Of a DNA stretch of 64,000 bases, positions 7,541 through 61,042 are shown piece after piece. Position 1 is the stretch's first letter; each line of letters starts with the position of its first letter. The stretch is from Mantamonas sphyraenae STR306 (lineage: Eukaryota; Protista; CRuMs). A program made the translations under genes and the position numbers. The notes below the pieces were generated by a model, which saw only the letters and a list, made by a program, of their open reading frames with translations, was not told the origin of the DNA and searched no databases. The DNA lies in assembly GCA_026936335.1 (NCBI GenBank), contig JAPMXV010000013.1, positions 183,156 through 247,155 of the forward strand, read 5' to 3'.

Positions 7541-10500
7541 ATGTTCCGCGCCCAGGCTTTCACGGAACAGGTGGTGAGCAAAGTGAAGGAGCTGGACGGG
7601 GAGGTGGTTGAGCTAGAGAAGCAGCTGAATCGGTATGCAAAGGCGTGCGAAGATATGGTGGCGAGTGCTCGTGCGGTAAGCCAGCTGTTGGTTAGGGTGC
7701 AGCTGATCTGCAACAACAAAGCGCCCCAATACGAGGCCATGCTGGCGTGCAAGGAACGCACTGCGTTGGATGGGGTCGACAACACGCTGTCCATGCGCCA
7801 CGACGAGTTGCAGCAGCTGATCAAGAGCTGGCGGGTGCTGTTGGGCACGTCCAAGGTAAGGAGGAGGGGACAAGGCTGGGAATCTGTGTGCGCTGCTTGC
7901 CTTGCTGCCGCGGCTGCTGACACGGGATCGGGTGCGTGTGTGCTGGCACAGTTGGATATGGCCATTCTCAGCAAGAGCTTGGAAAGCTATGACAAGCACG
8001 AGCGCAACCTGGTCACGTACCTGCAGCGGCCAAAAGGGAAGGCCCAGCAGGAGGCCATGGAAGGCGTTGCCAAGGTAAGATTGGAGGTGTGAGACGAGAC
8101 ACGAGACGTATGGCCAGTGGACGTGTCTGTGAGGCGTACGGTGTTTGCGACCGGGGCTGCGCGTGGGAGAGTGGCGGCGGTGCACAAAGAGGGCCACAGA
8201 ACATCTGACGCTGGAAGAATGGGGCACACAGAGTGCGCGGAGCATGCAGGAACTGCATGGACGACACGAAGAGGCACTGTTGCTCGCTTCCCAGCTGATG
8301 GAGAGCAGCGATCGCATCAACGAGGATGTGTTTGGTCAGGTTCGTGTTTGTTGTGTTGCTTTCGTGCTTGGGAACCGTGCGGGGTGCCTGCCAGCGAGCG
8401 TCGCCTCTTGCGGGTGGACGGCGACCCACACTCAACACTGACACACATCAATCACAGTTTGTAAGTATGGAGACGCTGGTCAGCAAAACGCTGGCTACGG
8501 CGGTTGAAGAGCGGCTCGCAGCGACAATGCCGCCCACAAGTCCGTCTGGCTCGGGCAAATCCGGCACAGCCACACCGTCATCGACACCAGAGCATGTGGA
8601 CAAACGCCGGGCATCGTCCGATGCCAGTTCAGACGCCCCCGAGGAAGACGAGGACGAAGAAGACGACGAAGACGACACCGATCTTGTCGCACAGCCGCTA
8701 GGGTCTCAAGAAGACGACACAGATCACATGGAATGGTGGATGGAACGTACAAACAGCGTGCCTGACCTATCAGATGGCACGTCTGGCGATGGTGAGGGCG
8801 AGAAGAGGCAACTAAGCGCTGAAGACGAGAAGCTGTTGGCGCTGGTCAGCGAGGAGCCGCAGAAGCTCAGGCGGACTTCGGTGAGTGCCAAGCAGGCGCG
8901 TACAAAGGGTATGCAGGACGGGGCGGGCAGTGGAAGAGAGGGGGGAGGGGAAGACGAGGAAACAGAGAACGATGAGGACGATGGAAAAGACGGCGGTGAG
9001 GAGGCAAACAAGCGCATGTCGACCATGCAAATGACACCGACGCTGATCAAGGCTATCAACCGGTCAGCGTCGATGCGCTCGGCGTCGTCGTCGTCGTCGT
9101 CCCTGTCGAGCGAGTCCAGTGTTGGAGCGCGCGTGGAGGCCATGTCACGTACGAAGAAGCGCAACAGCATGCAATTGGCGGCCGCGGTCAATCTGCACAA
9201 CATCAAAGCGAAAACCAATGATGGCACGCTCCCGACACTGGAGAATCTCGTGGACAATCCCGTGTCGCTGTGCTACTTTGTCAAGTTCCTGCAGGACCGC
9301 ACAGTCGTAGAGGCGTACCGCAACACACTGAACAGCAGCATGAAGCGGTCGACCACACACATGGGCAAAGTGGCGGTGTCGGGCACGAATCCAGACGCAG
9401 CGGCAACCGAGTTTTACATTGATGTGCTGTACTTCCGCAAGATGTACAACAAGCTGAATGGGGACAGCGTGGTGCAAGAGGCCAACCGCATCTTTGAGCG
9501 GTATCTGTCGATGGAGACCAAGGCCAAGGTGGCAGGGGTGAGAGACAGCGAACGCCACCGCGTGTTCACCATGGTCATCAACGGCGAGACGAGCGTGGAC
9601 ATGTTTGATGCGGCGGCGGACACGGTGGAGGTGCACATGGCACGCACAGCCATTCCAGACTTTGTACAGAGTGCAGCATTTTCCAATTACCTGCAAATGG
9701 AGAAGCGCATCCAGCAGGATCGAATCGAGGCCGTGGAGAGTGACCTGCGCAAAACCGACGACGCGCGACGAGCCGGATCCACGTCATCGCAAGGCAGCAG
9801 CATCGCAACCACAATGGGTGGATTACTGAGTCCACGAGGAAACAGCAGCAGCAGCAGCAACAGCAGTATGAGCAGTATGGGAGCAGGGGGGGCAGCGACC
9901 GCAGGGTCGATCACAGGGTCAAAGAGCATGCGACATTCACACAGTGCCGACGAAGCAGAGGGATCGTTGAATGTGATAGGATCCACTCCGTCGTCTGGAT
10001 TCTCTCTGCAAGCCCTGAAGCGGTTCACGGGGGCACCGTTTGGCAAGAGCGCGTCGTCGGCCAATCTGTTTGCGTCGACAAACGGGTCTGGCAGTCCGTC
10101 CAACAGCGGGAGAGCACGTGGAAGTGCACGTCGTGGCATGTCGTTGTCACAGCGGTCGGCAGAAAGCCAGCAGATGATGGGAACAGCGGCAGAGATGCTG
10201 AGCAGGTTTGGAACAGCAGGGAGCACGTCGATGATCATGCAGACGCTGGAGCCGTCGGAGCTGGTGTCGTGGAACTTTTCCACGCTGCACCACATGTTTA
10301 CCCCTGATTTCGAGGGCATTCACGTCATGGAGACAAAGGAGATGCGAAGACGCAGCAGGATCGTGTCGTCTCAGAGCGAGAGCACGAGTGCGGAGAGCAG
10401 TGTGGACGAAGAAGAAGCAGCAGCTGCAGCAGGGGTCATGAGTGAAGGTACGTCGTCGTCGGAAGATGAAGGGGACGACGCTCGGGCTATCTGGAGGCCA

Positions 10501-55131: not shown

Positions 55132-58101
55132 TCAAAATTCTTCATCCAACATGCCCGAGTACGGGTTCTCGACAACCGGGTGGAGAAAGACACGTTCGCC
55201 AGTGACGACATCCTCGTACTTGTCCAGGAGCTGCTGCCAGGAGTGGAAAAACGCGCCGTGTTCGCCTTCAAGGCCATGGACAACCTGGCCTTGCCATGTG
55301 CGTGTTTTGCTGTCCACAAGCAAGTGCGCAGCATGGCCTCCGTCGTCGATGACGTATGAGATGACAAACTTGCCTGGTTGATTGTGGCTGAGGCGGATGA
55401 GGAAGCTGCCCGGCCCTTTGCCGCCATTGCGGAGCCGTTCGACAGCAAGGCCACGGCGCAAGTAGCCATGGAAGCAGTTGCGGTGCTGCTGGTGGAAGCG
55501 CCAGGCAGCCTCGAAGCAGCGCACGCTGCCGTTGGTGCCGGTGAAGGGGCCAAAGAGCTCGAGGAACGTTTTGAAGGAGGAGACGCTGACCTGGCCGTCG
55601 TTCTCGACGAGAAAGTCACGGATGCCACGGAGTTGAGCCGGGGTCACGACGGTGCGACCTCGGACGGCGGCGGTGAACTCTTCCCAGGGGACGACGAGCT
55701 GGTGGCCGAGAGCGTCGATCCAGAACTGGCGGGCCAGATCATCCTCAATGTTAATGTCTGGCAGCTCCTCGGGCGGGGCCATGAGTTCGTCCTTGATCTC
55801 ATCGACAAGGACTGCGAGGGAGTCGAGGGTTTCGCCCTGGCCAAAGGCGAGGGCGAGCTGTGTGAGGACACCCGGATTGCCGACGGCGCGTCGGATGAGC
55901 TTGTGCTTGGCGAGGATCTGCCAGGACTTGAGCGGCCCTGTGTCTGCGCTTGCAAGGTTTGTGGAGGCAGCAAACGCGTGGAGCTCGAGGCGTAGCCTGC
56001 GGAAGGCCTTGCGATTGTAGCGGGCGTTCATGTGCTTGACGAATACGCGTGCGCTGTCGACGAGAGTGAGGGGTTCGAGCTCGACGGCGTTGGGTTTGTG
56101 CATGCCTATGGAGGCGCTGACAAAGTTGCTTGCGGTGATGACGAGCTGGAGGCCTTGGACGTTGGTTAGGAGTTTGAGGAAGCGGTAGAATTCTGTGTTG
56201 GCACTGTACACGCTGACCATGTTTTCCTGGACGCTGTCTGCGGCAGAGAGGACGCTATCTGTGGAGGAGGCAGTGCCCAGTCGAGCAGCGCCGGACGGGG
56301 CGACCTGGACAACGAGGCTGGAGGTGGAGGACACGGAACTTGTGCTGGAGGAGCCCGAGGAGGCTGAGGAGCCGGAACCGGGAGCAGTGCGACGCATTTG
56401 CTTGTACTTGCCAATGAGGGCGTCACAATTGTCGAGGACAAGGAGCATGCGGGCACTCTGGGAGGAGCTATGGACGCAGGCGCCGAACGAATCTCCGCGC
56501 AGGGCGTGTTGGATGTCCTTCCATGCACTCTGGTCTGTGTCGAGGCCAAGGAGAGTGGCGAGGGCGAGGCGCACGTCGCGTACGCTGGCGTATTCGCTGA
56601 CATCGAGCCAGAACGCGCCGCGCTCAAAGTAGCGGCGGTCGTTCATGTAGTGGGCAACCATCATGGAGATGGTGGACTTGCCGATGCCGCGGGGACCGTG
56701 AATGTACAGGGGTTGGTTGACGCCGCTGAGCTGGGAGGAGACGAGGAGGGAGATGAGGTTGTAGAGCTCTCTGGTGCGGCCTTCAAAAAGCGGCGGCAAG
56801 GCAGCAAGGTGGCGAGAGCACACGGGATCGCGCTCAACAAAGGTGGTGAGGTCATTGGGGGTCGCTGCAGGCAAAAGGACGACGTCGTGGTCTGCATCGA
56901 GGGGCAGGAGGGCAAAGCTGTTTGCGACGTCTTGGGGCGACGGGAGCTGCTGTGATGGGGTCTGCTTGCTGAGATTGGTGCGTGCGACCTCAAAGGCTTG
57001 GCGGACAGTGTTCTGGTGGGACAGGGAGCGGTAAAACTGGTCTGAGAAGAGGCGTGCGGCGAGATCGGGAATGCGGTTCTGATCTGCGCAAACGACGTGT
57101 GCGACGCCCACGTCGGCAAACATTTCGCCAATGGCCCTGGAGTAGCAGGAGGCGACAAATACAAGTTGGACACGGCAGGTGGCGGTCTGCATGAGGGCGC
57201 TGAGGTCGTCGCTGCTGACGACCTTTCCTGCACCGACGTCTTCAAAGAGAAGAGAGCCCGGAAGGCCATGGCCAGTAAAGTGGAGGATGCGACACTCGTC
57301 TGTGATGAGGTGGCCAAGGTTGCTGACTGTTGCGTTGCTCTGCTTGACGGAGATGGGGATGCCGCTGCTTTCCAGGGAGGCAAAGAGGGCACGCATGTCC
57401 GCCTTGACGTCAAGAGGAGGGAGGGACATAAAGACAGTTGTGCCGTCGGCGACTTCGTTGATGGGGCTGGGGGCTACTGAGGAGGCAGAGTCTGCAGAGG
57501 CGACGCGAGGGTCAGCACCAAAGTATTGGGCGGTCTCTTGCTCGTTGAAGAGGACCAGGGGCGCACTGTACAGGTAGCCAAAGAGGGGAGGTTTCTGCGC
57601 CTGGCTGTAGAGGCTGGAGGAGGAGGCGGCGGGAGCAATGGAGGCGGAGGAGGAGGAGGAGGAGGAGTTGTTGGCGTCGAAGCGGGTGCCGTCAAGGGAG
57701 AAGCCCTCGCCAAAGGCGTCGATGGCAAAGGTGCCACTGGGGGTGCGAGGCATGATGCGGGGTGAGACGACAAGCTGGGAGGCGCGCAGAGTGGGCTGGG
57801 TGTTGCCGTGGAGCTCTTCGGTTTCGGCTGCGATTTCGCGAGCATGTCCTTCGTCTTCGGAGGGGTCCTGGTCGTCGTGACCGTTTGTTTGGAGCTCGAG
57901 GTTAAGCTGAAGGGCTTCGCGCATGTGTTTGCTAGGCCTGCGAGTTTCATCGGAGAGGATGCGAGGGGAGTGCATACGAGGCCAGCTTCGGGACCACTGG
58001 ATCACCCTCTGCCGCTTGTCAGAGGCACCCGCCTGTTGTCGGGCAAGTTCGTGGTCGAGAGCACTGTCATGGTCGTCCCCGTCGCGATCCCGCTTGCTCA
58101 T
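55132..58101 (-). CDS. CHAT caspase-like protease - STAND (NB-ARC-like) ATPase - EF-hand/SH2 protein (989 aa)
   Basis: CHAT: ILHFTGHG and LVFVASCYS. STAND: FEGRTREL, Walker A GPRGIGKS, Walker B LLVLDNCD, LVITAS, LEPL, GNP. EF-hand-like ARQFW..VPWEEF..FGPF. SH2: FHGYL..GSFLIRLS..FVISYV. Confidence 0.88.
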   Translation of the reverse strand: MSKRDRDGDDHDSALDHELARQQAGASDKRQRVIQWSRSWPRMHSPRILSDETRRPSKHMREALQLNLELQTNGHDDQDPSEDEGHAREIAAETEELHGNTQPTLRASQLVVSPRIMPRTPSGTFAIDAFGEGFSLDGTRFDANNSSSSSSSASIAPAASSSSLYSQAQKPPLFGYLYSAPLVLFNEQETAQYFGADPRVASADSASSVAPSPINEVADGTTVFMSLPPLDVKADMRALFASLESSGIPISVKQSNATVSNLGHLITDECRILHFTGHGLPGSLLFEDVGAGKVVSSDDLSALMQTATCRVQLVFVASCYSRAIGEMFADVGVAHVVCADQNRIPDLAARLFSDQFYRSLSHQNTVRQAFEVARTNLSKQTPSQQLPSPQDVANSFALLPLDADHDVVLLPAATPNDLTTFVERDPVCSRHLAALPPLFEGRTRELYNLISLLVSSQLSGVNQPLYIHGPRGIGKSTISMMVAHYMNDRRYFERGAFWLDVSEYASVRDVRLALATLLGLDTDQSAWKDIQHALRGDSFGACVHSSSQSARMLLVLDNCDALIGKYKQMRRTAPGSGSSASSGSSSTSSVSSTSSLVVQVAPSGAARLGTASSTDSVLSAADSVQENMVSVYSANTEFYRFLKLLTNVQGLQLVITASNFVSASIGMHKPNAVELEPLTLVDSARVFVKHMNARYNRKAFRRLRLELHAFAASTNLASADTGPLKSWQILAKHKLIRRAVGNPGVLTQLALAFGQGETLDSLAVLVDEIKDELMAPPEELPDINIEDDLARQFWIDALGHQLVVPWEEFTAAVRGRTVVTPAQLRGIRDFLVENDGQVSVSSFKTFLELFGPFTGTNGSVRCFEAAWRFHQQHRNCFHGYLRRGLAVERLRNGGKGPGSFLIRLSHNQPGKFVISYVIDDGGHAAHLLVDSKTRTWQGQVVHGLEGEHGAFFHSWQQLLDKYEDVVTGERVFLHPVVENPYSGMLDEEF

Positions 58102-58152
58102 GTTGGGGGAGGAGCGCGTGGGAGATGTGTGCGATGGCGCAGGGAAGGAAAC

Positions 58153-61042
58153 ATGGACGAGGAGGACGAGTTGCAGGCGTGGGTTGTTGAGATGGAAACG
58201 GTGCTGGGTGGGGCCAACGGGCCTGTGTGCTGACACGAGTGCTTGATGCGTGTGTAGACTGCTGGCACAGATTGACGCAGAGGCGTTGGAGGAGCAGAGA
58301 AGCAATGGGAAGCGTGTGCTGGAGCAACATCAGATGGCGTTGGGGCAGCAAGCAAGCAAGCGGCAGCGTGTGGAGTCGCCAGCGTCACAGGAGTCGTCCA
58401 CGTCAGCAGCAAGGACGCCTACGCCGACTCCTGAGCGAGCACAGCCGTTGACGACGCGGCAGGTGAGAATAGTGGACTCGGAGGACGGAGAGACGACGGT
58501 GGAGGCGTTGACGGTCGAGCGGCCTGTGCGTGTGCAGAGACGACGGCCAAAGGCCAAGCGGTCGAGGGCTAGAGCGAGGGCAGAGGTGGGGGTGGGGGTG
58601 GGGCAGGGCGAGAGCTCGTCGTCGTCGGGGTATGAGCGGGCAAACGTGTATCCGAAGCTGGACATTCCCGAGAATCCGGAGGAACAGTACCCGCTGGTGT
58701 TGGACGCGGAAGCAGGGGTGATGGTGCCGGCAGGCGTGAACCAATACCTGAGAGACTACCAGAGAGACGGCATTACGTGGCTGTACGACCGGTTCTCACG
58801 GTCGACAGGGGCGATTTTGGGCGACGACATGGGCCTGGGCAAAACGGTTCAGATTGTGGCGCTGTTGATGGCGGTGCTGGGGCGGGACTGCTCGTCGGAC
58901 GGAGGCACGTCGGCACGCTACGATGAACCGTTGCCGCCCGTACTGATTATAGCACCCAAGTCGCTGTTGTACAACTGGAGGCGGGAGTTGACAACGTGGG
59001 GCTTCTTTTCGACGCTGATCTACCACGGAACTGGACGAGCAGCAGACTTGGAGTCGTCGGCACACTATGACGTAGTGATCACGACGTATGGGACGGCAGC
59101 AAACGACCACGAGTTTCTGCTCCGGCAGCCGTGGCTGTGTGCGATTCTGGACGAGTGCCAGGAGATACGGAACCACGAGTCACAGCGGCATGTGGCGCTG
59201 TTCAAGATGTTGCAACACACGCCGGTGCGGATTGGGCTGACGGGAACACCGATGATGAACAACTACAACGAGCTGTGGGCACTGTTCAACTTTTTCGTTC
59301 CCGGGTCGCTGGGCGCACTGAACCACTACATTGCAAGCGTGGCGCAGGTGCTGCGGATGGGCCAGAGTGCACACGCAAACGAACGTCAGGTGGCGGAAGC
59401 GACGGTGGTGCAGAACAAACACGCGGTAACGCTTGCGCGGCACATGCTGCGCCGCGAGAAGAGTCTCATTGCCCACCAGCTGCCAAAGAAGCAGGACATT
59501 GTGTTGTTCTGCCCCATGAGCCAGCTGCAGGCCAAGGTGTACTCGAATCTGGTGAGCGACTCGGGCAAGGAGATGTACTTGTCGCACGAAAGGACGTCGG
59601 GTTTGTCATACATGTTCAGCGTGATGGCGGTGCTACAGAAAGCGGCCAACCATCTGCGCATGATCTTGCCAAAGACGACGAGCGATCACCTGTCGCGTGA
59701 AATCGAAGAGTTGTGGAGCAGCATCGGATTGGGCCCAAACTGGGAGCGATGGGCACAGCAGACGAGCGGGTTCGACGCAGTGACGAACTGGAAGTACTGC
59801 GGCAAGCTGCGCATCCTGCAAACGATGATTCCGCTGTGGCGGGAGCGGGGAGACAAGGTGCTGCTGTTTTCGCGGTCGCGGCGGATGCTGGACATCATGG
59901 CCAAGTTTCTGACGGCACAGAACGAGTTTGACTTTCTGCAACTGGACGGGAGGACGTCGATGCAGGCGCGGCAAGGGATGGTGGACGAGTTTAACAGCAA
60001 CGAGCAGAAGAGGATCTTTTTGATCTCGACGCTGGCAGGCGGGGTGGGGCTGAATTTGACGGCAGCCAACGTGGTGGTGATCATGGATCCGCACTGGAAC
60101 CCTGCGCTGGATTTGCAGGCGCAGGACAGGAGCTTCAGGATTGGGCAGAGCCGGGACGTGACTGTGTTTCGGCTGCTGAGCGCAGGGAGCATCGAGGAGA
60201 TGATGTACATGCGTCAGGTGTACAAACAGCAGCAGAACAACGTGGCAGTGCGCAACATGATCCAGGAGCGATACTTTTCCGGGGTGCAGGACACGGAAGA
60301 GAAGGGCGAGTTGTTTGGGATTGACAACTTGATCCAGACGATGCAGTCGAAGCTGCTGATGTACAGGCTGATTGAAACATCCAAAGGCAAAGACGAGATT
60401 GCACAGCACACGAGGATGAGCCGTGACTTGCTGATGTACGACCAGGAGGAGGATTGGGAGGGAGACGAGGAGGGCGGGGCGTTGGAAGGGCTGATTGGGG
60501 GCGGGGACTACGCAGACGCTCTGCCAATGGTGGAGGGATACGGGATGGGGACGCAGGTGGATCGGAAAAGGGAGAGGGGGTCTTTGAGCAGGAGTGCAAT
60601 GAGGAGAACGGGTGGGAGCGGGCCAGTACAACTGGAGCCGAACGATGATGCATTGCCAGACATTGTGGCGGAGCTGCAGCAAAAGTGCGGAGTGCCGTAT
60701 GCGCACTTGTTTGCAGAGGTGACGCAGCAGACGCATGCAGAGACGGAGTTTCGGGACAAGCTGCTTGAGGGGTCGTTGCCAGAGCACATGCGGACGGGGG
60801 TGACGCGAGTGAAGGAGAAGCAACAGCAGCAACAGGTGAGGCAGAGGGATATTTTGGGCAAGACATACGCGGAGAGGAAGACAGTGGTGTTGTGTCAGCA
60901 GTTTCGGGAGATGGCGGCGATGGTGGAGATGGAGGAGGCGGAGTTTGCGAGGTGGATTCTGAGCGACGACGTGCCGGTGACGGAGAAACAGGGTGTGTTG
61001 GATCGGTTTGCGCATAGCATGATGATGGGGAGGGGTGGGTGA
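58153..61042 (+). CDS. ERCC6L2: SNF2-family helicase ERCC6L2/Rad26-like, 2 exons
   Basis: Exon 58153-58178 (MDEEDELQA), intron 58179-58257. LRDYQRDG, ILGDDMGLGKTVQ, DECQ, LTGTP, WNPALDLQAQDRSFRIGQ, RQVYKQQ, RYFSGVQ..GELFGIDNL. Confidence 0.88.

Follow-up and report, generated by a model that had tools for sequence, protein, structure and literature searches.

A protein with CHAT, STAND-type and SH2 modules

The window analyzed here is a stretch of 64,000 nucleotides from Mantamonas sphyraenae STR306 (contig JAPMXV010000013.1, positions 183,156 to 247,155), and the gene under study, named C13 here, occupies positions 55132-58101 on its minus strand. The frame is free of stop codons over 55132..58305, and its first ATG, at 58101, gives a protein of 989 amino acids (aa), in which a CHAT protease domain, a STAND-type nucleotide-binding domain (NBD) with helical domain HD1, an EF-hand-like domain and an SH2 domain follow one another in a single exon (Table 1). 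GC contents at codon positions 1, 2 and 3 (0.64/0.45/0.74) resemble those of the adjoining Ada3 and Snf2 genes. Domains were assigned with Pfam and on a structure predicted by AlphaFold for aa 161-989 (pLDDT 78.4, pTM 0.71); the genome searched comprised 25,061,354 bases in 78 contigs, and the published assembly is given as 25.06 Mb in 78 contigs with a GC content of 59% (PMC10492846). A first-pass annotation of the same DNA had placed all domains in one open reading frame (ORF) and named a split by the mRNA among the possible flaws; for the family this objection fails because single-ORF transcripts from M. plastica and from Rhizaria hold the whole layout.

Table 1. Coordinates of the C13 gene, its domains and key residues in the window, with phosphotyrosine-related genes located elsewhere in the genome
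Feature	Residues	Position	Strand	Basis
CHAT-STAND(NBD+HD1)-EF-hand-SH2 gene, single exon	1-989	55132..58101	-	ORF, Pfam, codon GC
N-terminal region, low complexity	1-170	57592..58101	-	Unconserved; homolog matches start at ~aa 200-230
CHAT (caspase-hemoglobinase fold) protease domain	~171-414	56860..57591	-	PF12770, structure match, dyad conservation
HFTGHG motif, catalytic His-Gly	H278, G279	57268-57270		
VASCYS motif	C319	57145-57147		
STAND-type NBD	~432-675	56077..56808	-	N-terminal GR motif, Walker A, Walker B, sensor-1 Thr without Arg
Walker A, GPRGIGKS	K475	56677		
Walker B, LLVLDN	D557	56431		
Ser-rich disordered insert in NBD	~575-636	56194-56379	-	AlphaFold model
HD1 helical domain with GxP, no winged helix after it		55777..56076	-	AlphaFold model, profile, control model
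GxP motif, GNP (G741-N-P743)	P743	55873		
EF-hand-like helical domain (Cbl_N2; STAT linker counterpart)	~787-872	55486..55743	-	PF02761, Cbl TKB matches
SH2 domain	~874-968	55198..55482	-	PF00017; RASA1 and Cbl-c SH2 alignments
FLIRLS motif	R903	55393		
Short acidic C-terminal tail		55135..55197	-	Paralogue comparison
Candidate phosphosite in tail	Y981	55159-55161		
Two STAT-like proteins (one with C-terminal PYI tyrosine motif) and Cbl-like EF-SH2-RING protein		L043:1333-2781, L044:640-1986, L047:1126-2424	-, +, +	

The CHAT profile PF12770 matches aa 177-383 with 39.2 bits (cut-off, 24), and the catalytic histidine and cysteine, reported as intact in the first-pass annotation, lie where they had been placed. 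In structural comparisons the modeled domain was closest to the SAVED-CHAT protein 8tl0 (Z score, 23.8; root mean square deviation [rmsd], 2.3; 195 residues aligned), with caspases and separase scoring Z 12-13. The dyad is kept in SH2-bearing homologs (His in 28/29, Cys in 27/29). C13 thus has the fold and the His/Cys dyad of an active caspase-like cysteine protease, and proteolytic activity is predicted on these grounds.

At the other end of the protein, Cbl_N2 (PF02761) matches aa 787-854 with 26.9 bits (cut-off, 22) and SH2 (PF00017) matches aa 877-935 with 33.6 bits (cut-off, 21). The best match of the combined unit is the tyrosine kinase-binding (TKB) region of Cbl, both by Foldseek (E ~1e-9) and by sequence (E 5e-6), which bears out the earlier claim of a Cbl-TKB-type EF-hand and SH2 unit in the sensor position, complete with its phosphotyrosine (pTyr)-binding arginine. 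The pTyr pocket is complete in C13 (alphaA2 R882, betaB5 R903, betaB7 S905 and betaD4 H926), and SH2-bearing homologs keep the betaB5 arginine in 33/34 and the betaB7 serine in 32/34 cases. The C13 SH2 domain is therefore a candidate pTyr reader, with binding predicted from its pocket residues. By Pfam, C13 contains neither the Cbl_N four-helix bundle nor a RING, which separates it from Cbl E3 ligases; neither a coiled-coil nor a DNA-binding domain ahead of the SH2, which separates it from STATs; and no kinase domain, which separates it from the Dictyostelium SHK kinases. The C-terminus has the EF-hand and SH2 domains in place of the LRR, TPR, WD40 or ANK repeat sensor of an NLR.

Beyond the SH2 domain, a tyrosine is found 5-11 residues downstream in four Mantamonas lineages with an intact dyad (C13, C49a together with M. 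plastica P0005, C73 and C51), compared to a background tyrosine frequency of 2%, and it is missing in the pseudo-protease paralogues C3 and C49b. As a family-wide feature the tail tyrosine was rejected, since it is restricted to Mantamonas.

A STAND-derived core that lacks the winged helix

The region between the protease and the EF-hand had been read in the first pass as an NB-ARC-like STAND module. Its Walker A, Walker B and GxP motifs are in place and the model shows an NBD and HD1, but NB-ARC, NACHT and AAA_16 match aa 441-570 with E ~1e-4, all under their Pfam cut-offs, and two elements are missing, namely the winged-helix domain (WHD) and the arginine of the sensor-1 T-x-R motif, which reads ITASN in C13 and contains the arginine in 11/30 SH2-bearing homologs. 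The hallmarks of an ASCE P-loop NBD are all present (GR helix, Walker A GxxGxGK[ST], Walker B hhhhD), and the Walker A lysine, Walker B aspartate and GxP proline are each kept in 30/30 SH2-bearing homologs. The C13 NTPase model aligned to ZAR1, ORC/CDC6, CED-4 and Apaf-1 with Z 15-17; the ZAR1 match (6j5t; Z 17.0, rmsd 3.4, 234 residues aligned) was tied with ORC/CDC6, and the ZAR1 alignments end at residue 410 of that chain. The serine-rich insert in the NBD was considered as an intron, a reading that was rejected because an M. plastica transcript, from the orthologue of a paralogue, has an insert at the same site.

In STAND proteins, the nucleotide-binding oligomerization domain is composed of NBD, HD1 and WHD, and an ADP-mediated contact between NBD and WHD is pivotal for autoinhibition (PMC10427625). 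In C13, 36 residues separate the GxP motif from the EF-hand. A WHD profile built from the post-GxP region of TPR-bearing relatives matched 0/34 SH2-bearing members and 27 relatives without SH2, 9 of them outside the training set, including the paralogue on C5. Because Pfam did not recognize the WHD even in TPR-bearing relatives, its presence there was shown by a folding control: the model of the Methanothrix relative P0001 (pLDDT 87.8) contains a winged helix and aligned through it to PH0952 (Z 25.1), Apaf-1 (22.8), NRC2 (22.2) and MalT (21.9). A search with the family profile returned bacterial STANDs of the AfsR/SARP type and missed the SH2-bearing family. From these results we conclude that the C13 core is descended from a true AP-ATPase/MalT-class STAND in which the EF-SH2 unit took the place of the WHD and the repeat sensor. 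C13 is best described as a WHD-less STAND derivative, neither a canonical STAND nor an NLR, which may still work like one. Given the shared loss of the WHD, the switch must work otherwise than in Apaf-1, ZAR1 or MalT; the apoptosome- or inflammasome-like switch proposed earlier therefore cannot be assumed, its modules being conserved but the analogy being weakened by the missing WHD.

Distribution, paralogues and origin of the family

Among 1.84 billion representatives scanned, 3568 matched, and in 30 of the best 150 of these the same core is followed by an EF-SH2 unit, confirmed by Pfam in most. The best homolog of the C13 protein is from M. plastica, whose transcripts include P0005 (68% identical to C49a) and P0104. 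The layout is also found in the chlorarachniophytes Norrisiella and Partenskyella, in the cercozoan Mataza sp. D1 and in the foraminiferan Nonionella stella, while other SH2-bearing members are on contigs, several with clearly eukaryotic neighbors (IFT57, clathrin light chain and phosducin). As the layout is present in two distant supergroups, CRuMs (Mantamonas) and Rhizaria, it must either be very old or have arisen more than once, each time by acquisition of a pTyr reader by one and the same type of protease-ATPase core. Because the dyad, NTPase and SH2 residues are kept in ~30 homologs at ~25% identity, all three modules appear to be selected for function.

Of the other matches, some have TPR sensors (19/46 C-terminal extensions, among them Methanothrix and Phytophthora) and others carry LRR, SPRY or kinase domains at the N-terminus; the SH2 domain of C13-type proteins sits where sister proteins have the TPR sensor. 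Many relatives (P0044, P0092, P0112, P0114, P0139, P0148 and others) end with the CHAT-NBD-HD1 unit, which is preceded by LRR, SPRY or kinase domains; 11/20 of these stop 20-73 residues past the GxP motif, although some may be truncated gene calls. The WHD-less CHAT-NBD-HD1 unit may be a mobile module. In the ESM Atlas the nearby clusters are bacterial CHAT-STAND proteins, none with SH2. One cluster there, of FHA-domain proteins of 1060 aa from oomycetes (score, 0.85-0.86; 180+ shared features), may represent CHAT-STANDs with a phosphothreonine reader, which we note as a lead only. PADLOC returned no match for the C13 protein.

The search of the M. sphyraenae genome for paralogues, suggested in the first pass, showed that the gene is not unique. 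The CHAT(-like)-STAND-EF-SH2 layout is present at eight loci, i.e., C13, three on C49, and one each on C73, C51, C3 and C1; several paralogues have introns and were examined exon by exon, without joining of exons, and they align to the C13 protein with 20-30% identity. The His/Cys dyad is intact at five loci (C13, C49a, C49c, C73 and C51), and the remaining three, C3, C49b and C1b, encode pseudo-proteases, that of C3 with an additional CLU domain at its N-terminus. Other CHAT genes, one on C5 that encodes a tandem CHAT-STAND-TPR protein and more on C67/C68, lack SH2. The C5 frame of 2387 aa (L026:2960-10000, minus strand) holds two CHAT-STAND units and TPRs, the first unit with an intact dyad and winged helix and the second apparently degenerate. 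On C1, a head-to-head CHAT-STAND pair (L028:4018-6387, minus strand, and 8193-9839, plus strand) has degenerate catalytic motifs in both members and EF-SH2 on one. Clustered divergent paralogues, pseudo-protease copies and a head-to-head pair form a pattern that is suggestive of immune-receptor families.

The origin of the SH2-bearing members was followed in two trees. In the core tree (FastTree, 152 rows) they form a Mantamonas group (support, 87) and a larger group (93), weakly joined (80). In the EF-SH2 tree, the Mantamonas units group with the Cbl of this genome and the others with its STAT-like proteins (SH-aLRT 86 each), in agreement with Pfam, which finds Cbl_N2 in Mantamonas versus STAT_linker/EF-hand_12 in the others. 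A single EF-SH2 clade was not rejected (AU p 0.45), and both one ancient fusion and two captures of the EF-SH2 unit remain compatible with the trees.

Phosphotyrosine as a possible switch for the protease

Signaling by pTyr is implied by genes present besides the C13 family, namely those for a Cbl-like EF-SH2-RING protein and for two STAT-like proteins and four loci with long matches to classical protein tyrosine phosphatases (PTPs). The genome also has many PK_Tyr_Ser-Thr (TKL-type) kinases. Because the tyrosine-kinase motif HRDLA[AT]RN was not found within single exons of the genome, where other patterns gave only TKL-like near matches, pTyr is probably written by kinases of the TKL or dual-specificity type. 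Candidate writers are some ten kinases with nearly equal scores, in frames of 1200-1600 aa on C25, C2 and C9 and clustered on C25 and C2, which possibly form a receptor-like TKL family. Separately, one frame of 1354 aa (L049:1-3213 = C42:395485-398697 and onward) contains two kinase domains downstream of a STAT-type linker-SH2, an order that recalls JAK, with the STAT-like region placed upstream.

We favor, with a probability of about one half, a model in which pTyr binding by the SH2 domain clusters or unlocks the protein and thereby activates the CHAT protease. The pTyr bound by the SH2 would lie on the tail of a kinase or receptor; alternatively, in Mantamonas, it would be phosphorylated Y981 of a second copy, in the manner of a STAT dimer. 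Clustering, aided by ATP-dependent NBD-HD1 contacts, would then gather the CHAT domains, whose proximity would fire the protease as in initiator caspases and SAVED-CHAT filaments; a substrate might finally be cut in a stress, defense or death pathway, the weakest step of the scheme. Each of these steps is drawn by analogy with STATs, caspases and SAVED-CHAT, and ligand- and ATP-driven oligomerization of C13 in particular is a prediction. In favor of the model, the closest CHAT structure is that of a SAVED-CHAT filament activated by oligomerization; the conserved dyad, nucleotide-binding and pocket residues, the pTyr machinery of the genome, the tail tyrosine, the sensor position of the SH2 and the paralogue pattern described above point the same way. 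A wider version is doubtful and put forward tentatively: C13 would belong to an ancient pathway of eukaryotes through which phosphorylation on tyrosine directly triggers the assembly and firing of a caspase-like protease. In the WHD-less STAND, SH2-pTyr contacts (STAT-like and reciprocal in Mantamonas) would stand in for the lock and sensor of an NLR, and the protein would serve protists of at least two supergroups as a defense or death switch.

Several results weigh against activation by pTyr-driven clustering, or against its place in defense. With both the WHD and the sensor-1 arginine missing, the known STAND switch is not transferable to C13. The tyrosine-kinase motif was not found within single exons of the genome, and outside Mantamonas the tail tyrosine is missing in most members. 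One non-Mantamonas clade is conserved at 63-65% identity between samples, which would fit routine signaling as well as immunity. No substrate-like gene lies next to C13, in agreement with the first-pass statement that none is evident in the window; the neighbors by Pfam are housekeeping genes, Ada3 downstream and a Snf2-family helicase arranged head-to-head, the first ATGs of C13 and the helicase being ~230 bases apart (58101-58334). Fungal CHAT domains cleave gasdermins (PMC8851545), and the gasdermin profile PF04598 had no match in the genome, although this model may miss distant gasdermins. The suggestion that C13 serves immunity or cell death, for example by guarding against pathogen kinases, thus finds no direct support, and such a role is unproven.

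The SH2 domain could instead be a targeting module, bringing the protease to tyrosine-phosphorylated substrates and shutting signaling off as a proteolytic counterpart of the Cbl TKB-RING arrangement. The grouping of the Mantamonas EF-SH2 with the genome's own Cbl, its best match to the Cbl TKB and the loss of the usual sensor-to-ATPase relay along with the WHD are consistent with this, but it leaves unexplained both why Walker A/B and GxP are so strictly conserved and why the SH2 sits exactly where TPR relatives have their sensor, and we consider it unlikely. That same position, 36 residues past the GxP motif where an inhibitory WHD would be expected, could also suit a brake: the EF-SH2 would replace the WHD and hold the resting protein closed, either packed on the NBD or with its SH2 bound to a phosphorylated tail or partner, until dephosphorylation or a competing pTyr ligand, for instance one from a pathogen enzyme, released it in the way of Src or of guard receptors. 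The tail tyrosine, kept in active copies and missing in two dead ones, and the classical PTPs of the genome point this way; however, at 5-11 residues past the SH2 the tyrosine is probably too near for binding in cis, and its absence from most non-Mantamonas members counts here too, so that a brake seems rather unlikely.

A STAND-derived protease switch with an input other than pTyr, the SH2 recognizing phosphoserine or phosphothreonine, a lipid or an unmodified peptide, would accommodate the missing tyrosine-kinase signature, and SH2 domains that bind phosphoserine or phosphothreonine exist, e.g., in Spt6. Against this stand the full and conserved R882/R903/S905/H926 pocket and the Cbl, STAT-like proteins and PTPs of the genome, and we regard it as quite improbable. 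That misassembly or read-through joined separate genes has in its favor that no RNA run was listed for C13 itself, but it is extremely improbable given the single stop-free frame, seven paralogous loci in the same domain order and full-length transcript-derived homologs in M. plastica and Rhizaria.

The component parts of C13, and CHAT-STAND-TPR proteins, are already known; what appears to be new is the SH2 in the sensor position and the WHD-less family. As the first pass had supposed, the open full-text literature, a body from which most subscription journals are absent, yielded no account of a protease-STAND with an SH2 as its sensor, nor of this WHD-less family. One paper combines STAND NTPases, SH2 and caspases, with SH2 mentioned only for TRADD-N proteins (PMC8195603), and a 2026 survey of prokaryotic STANDs mentions neither SH2 nor CHAT (PMC12803255). 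In C13-type proteins, tyrosine phosphorylation may switch on a protease directly, and C13 offers a single-protein test both of the role of pTyr signaling in protists without classical tyrosine kinases and of the control of caspase-like proteases in unicellular eukaryotes.

The nearest known systems are the CHAT-STAND-TPR proteins of bacteria, archaea (Methanothrix P0001) and oomycetes (Phytophthora P0002/P0003), whose CHAT, NBD and HD1 core is homologous to that of C13 (E 1e-41 and 35% identity to P0001). Like these and the fungal CHAT HET-Q2-like/NLR-like proteins (PMC8851545), C13 has an N-terminal protease and a C-terminal ligand-binding module, but the EF-hand and SH2 stand for the WHD and TPRs, and neither a gasdermin gene nor that of another substrate is linked to it. 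With AP-ATPase/MalT-class STANDs (PH0952, Apaf-1, CED-4, ZAR1/NRC, MalT and the AfsR type) it has the NBD and HD1 fold in common (Z 15-17), whereas it is devoid of the WHD, arm, repeat sensor and sensor-1 arginine, and its protease is fused in cis rather than recruited. SAVED-CHAT (8tl0) likewise fuses a ligand sensor to CHAT, yet the C13 sensor is an SH2, not a cyclic-oligonucleotide-binding SAVED domain, and an ATPase lies in between. Compared to Cbl, with which it shares the EF-hand and SH2 unit, C13 lacks the four-helix bundle and RING, and its output would be a protease, not a ubiquitin ligase. Non-Mantamonas members match the STAT_linker/EF-hand_12 of STATs and Mantamonas members have a tyrosine just past the SH2; unlike STATs, C13 has no coiled-coil or DNA-binding domain, and the tail tyrosine is nearer the SH2 and mostly missing in the STAT-like group. 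C13 thus joins in one protein SH2/pTyr signaling and STAND/caspase activation, which are separate in animals.

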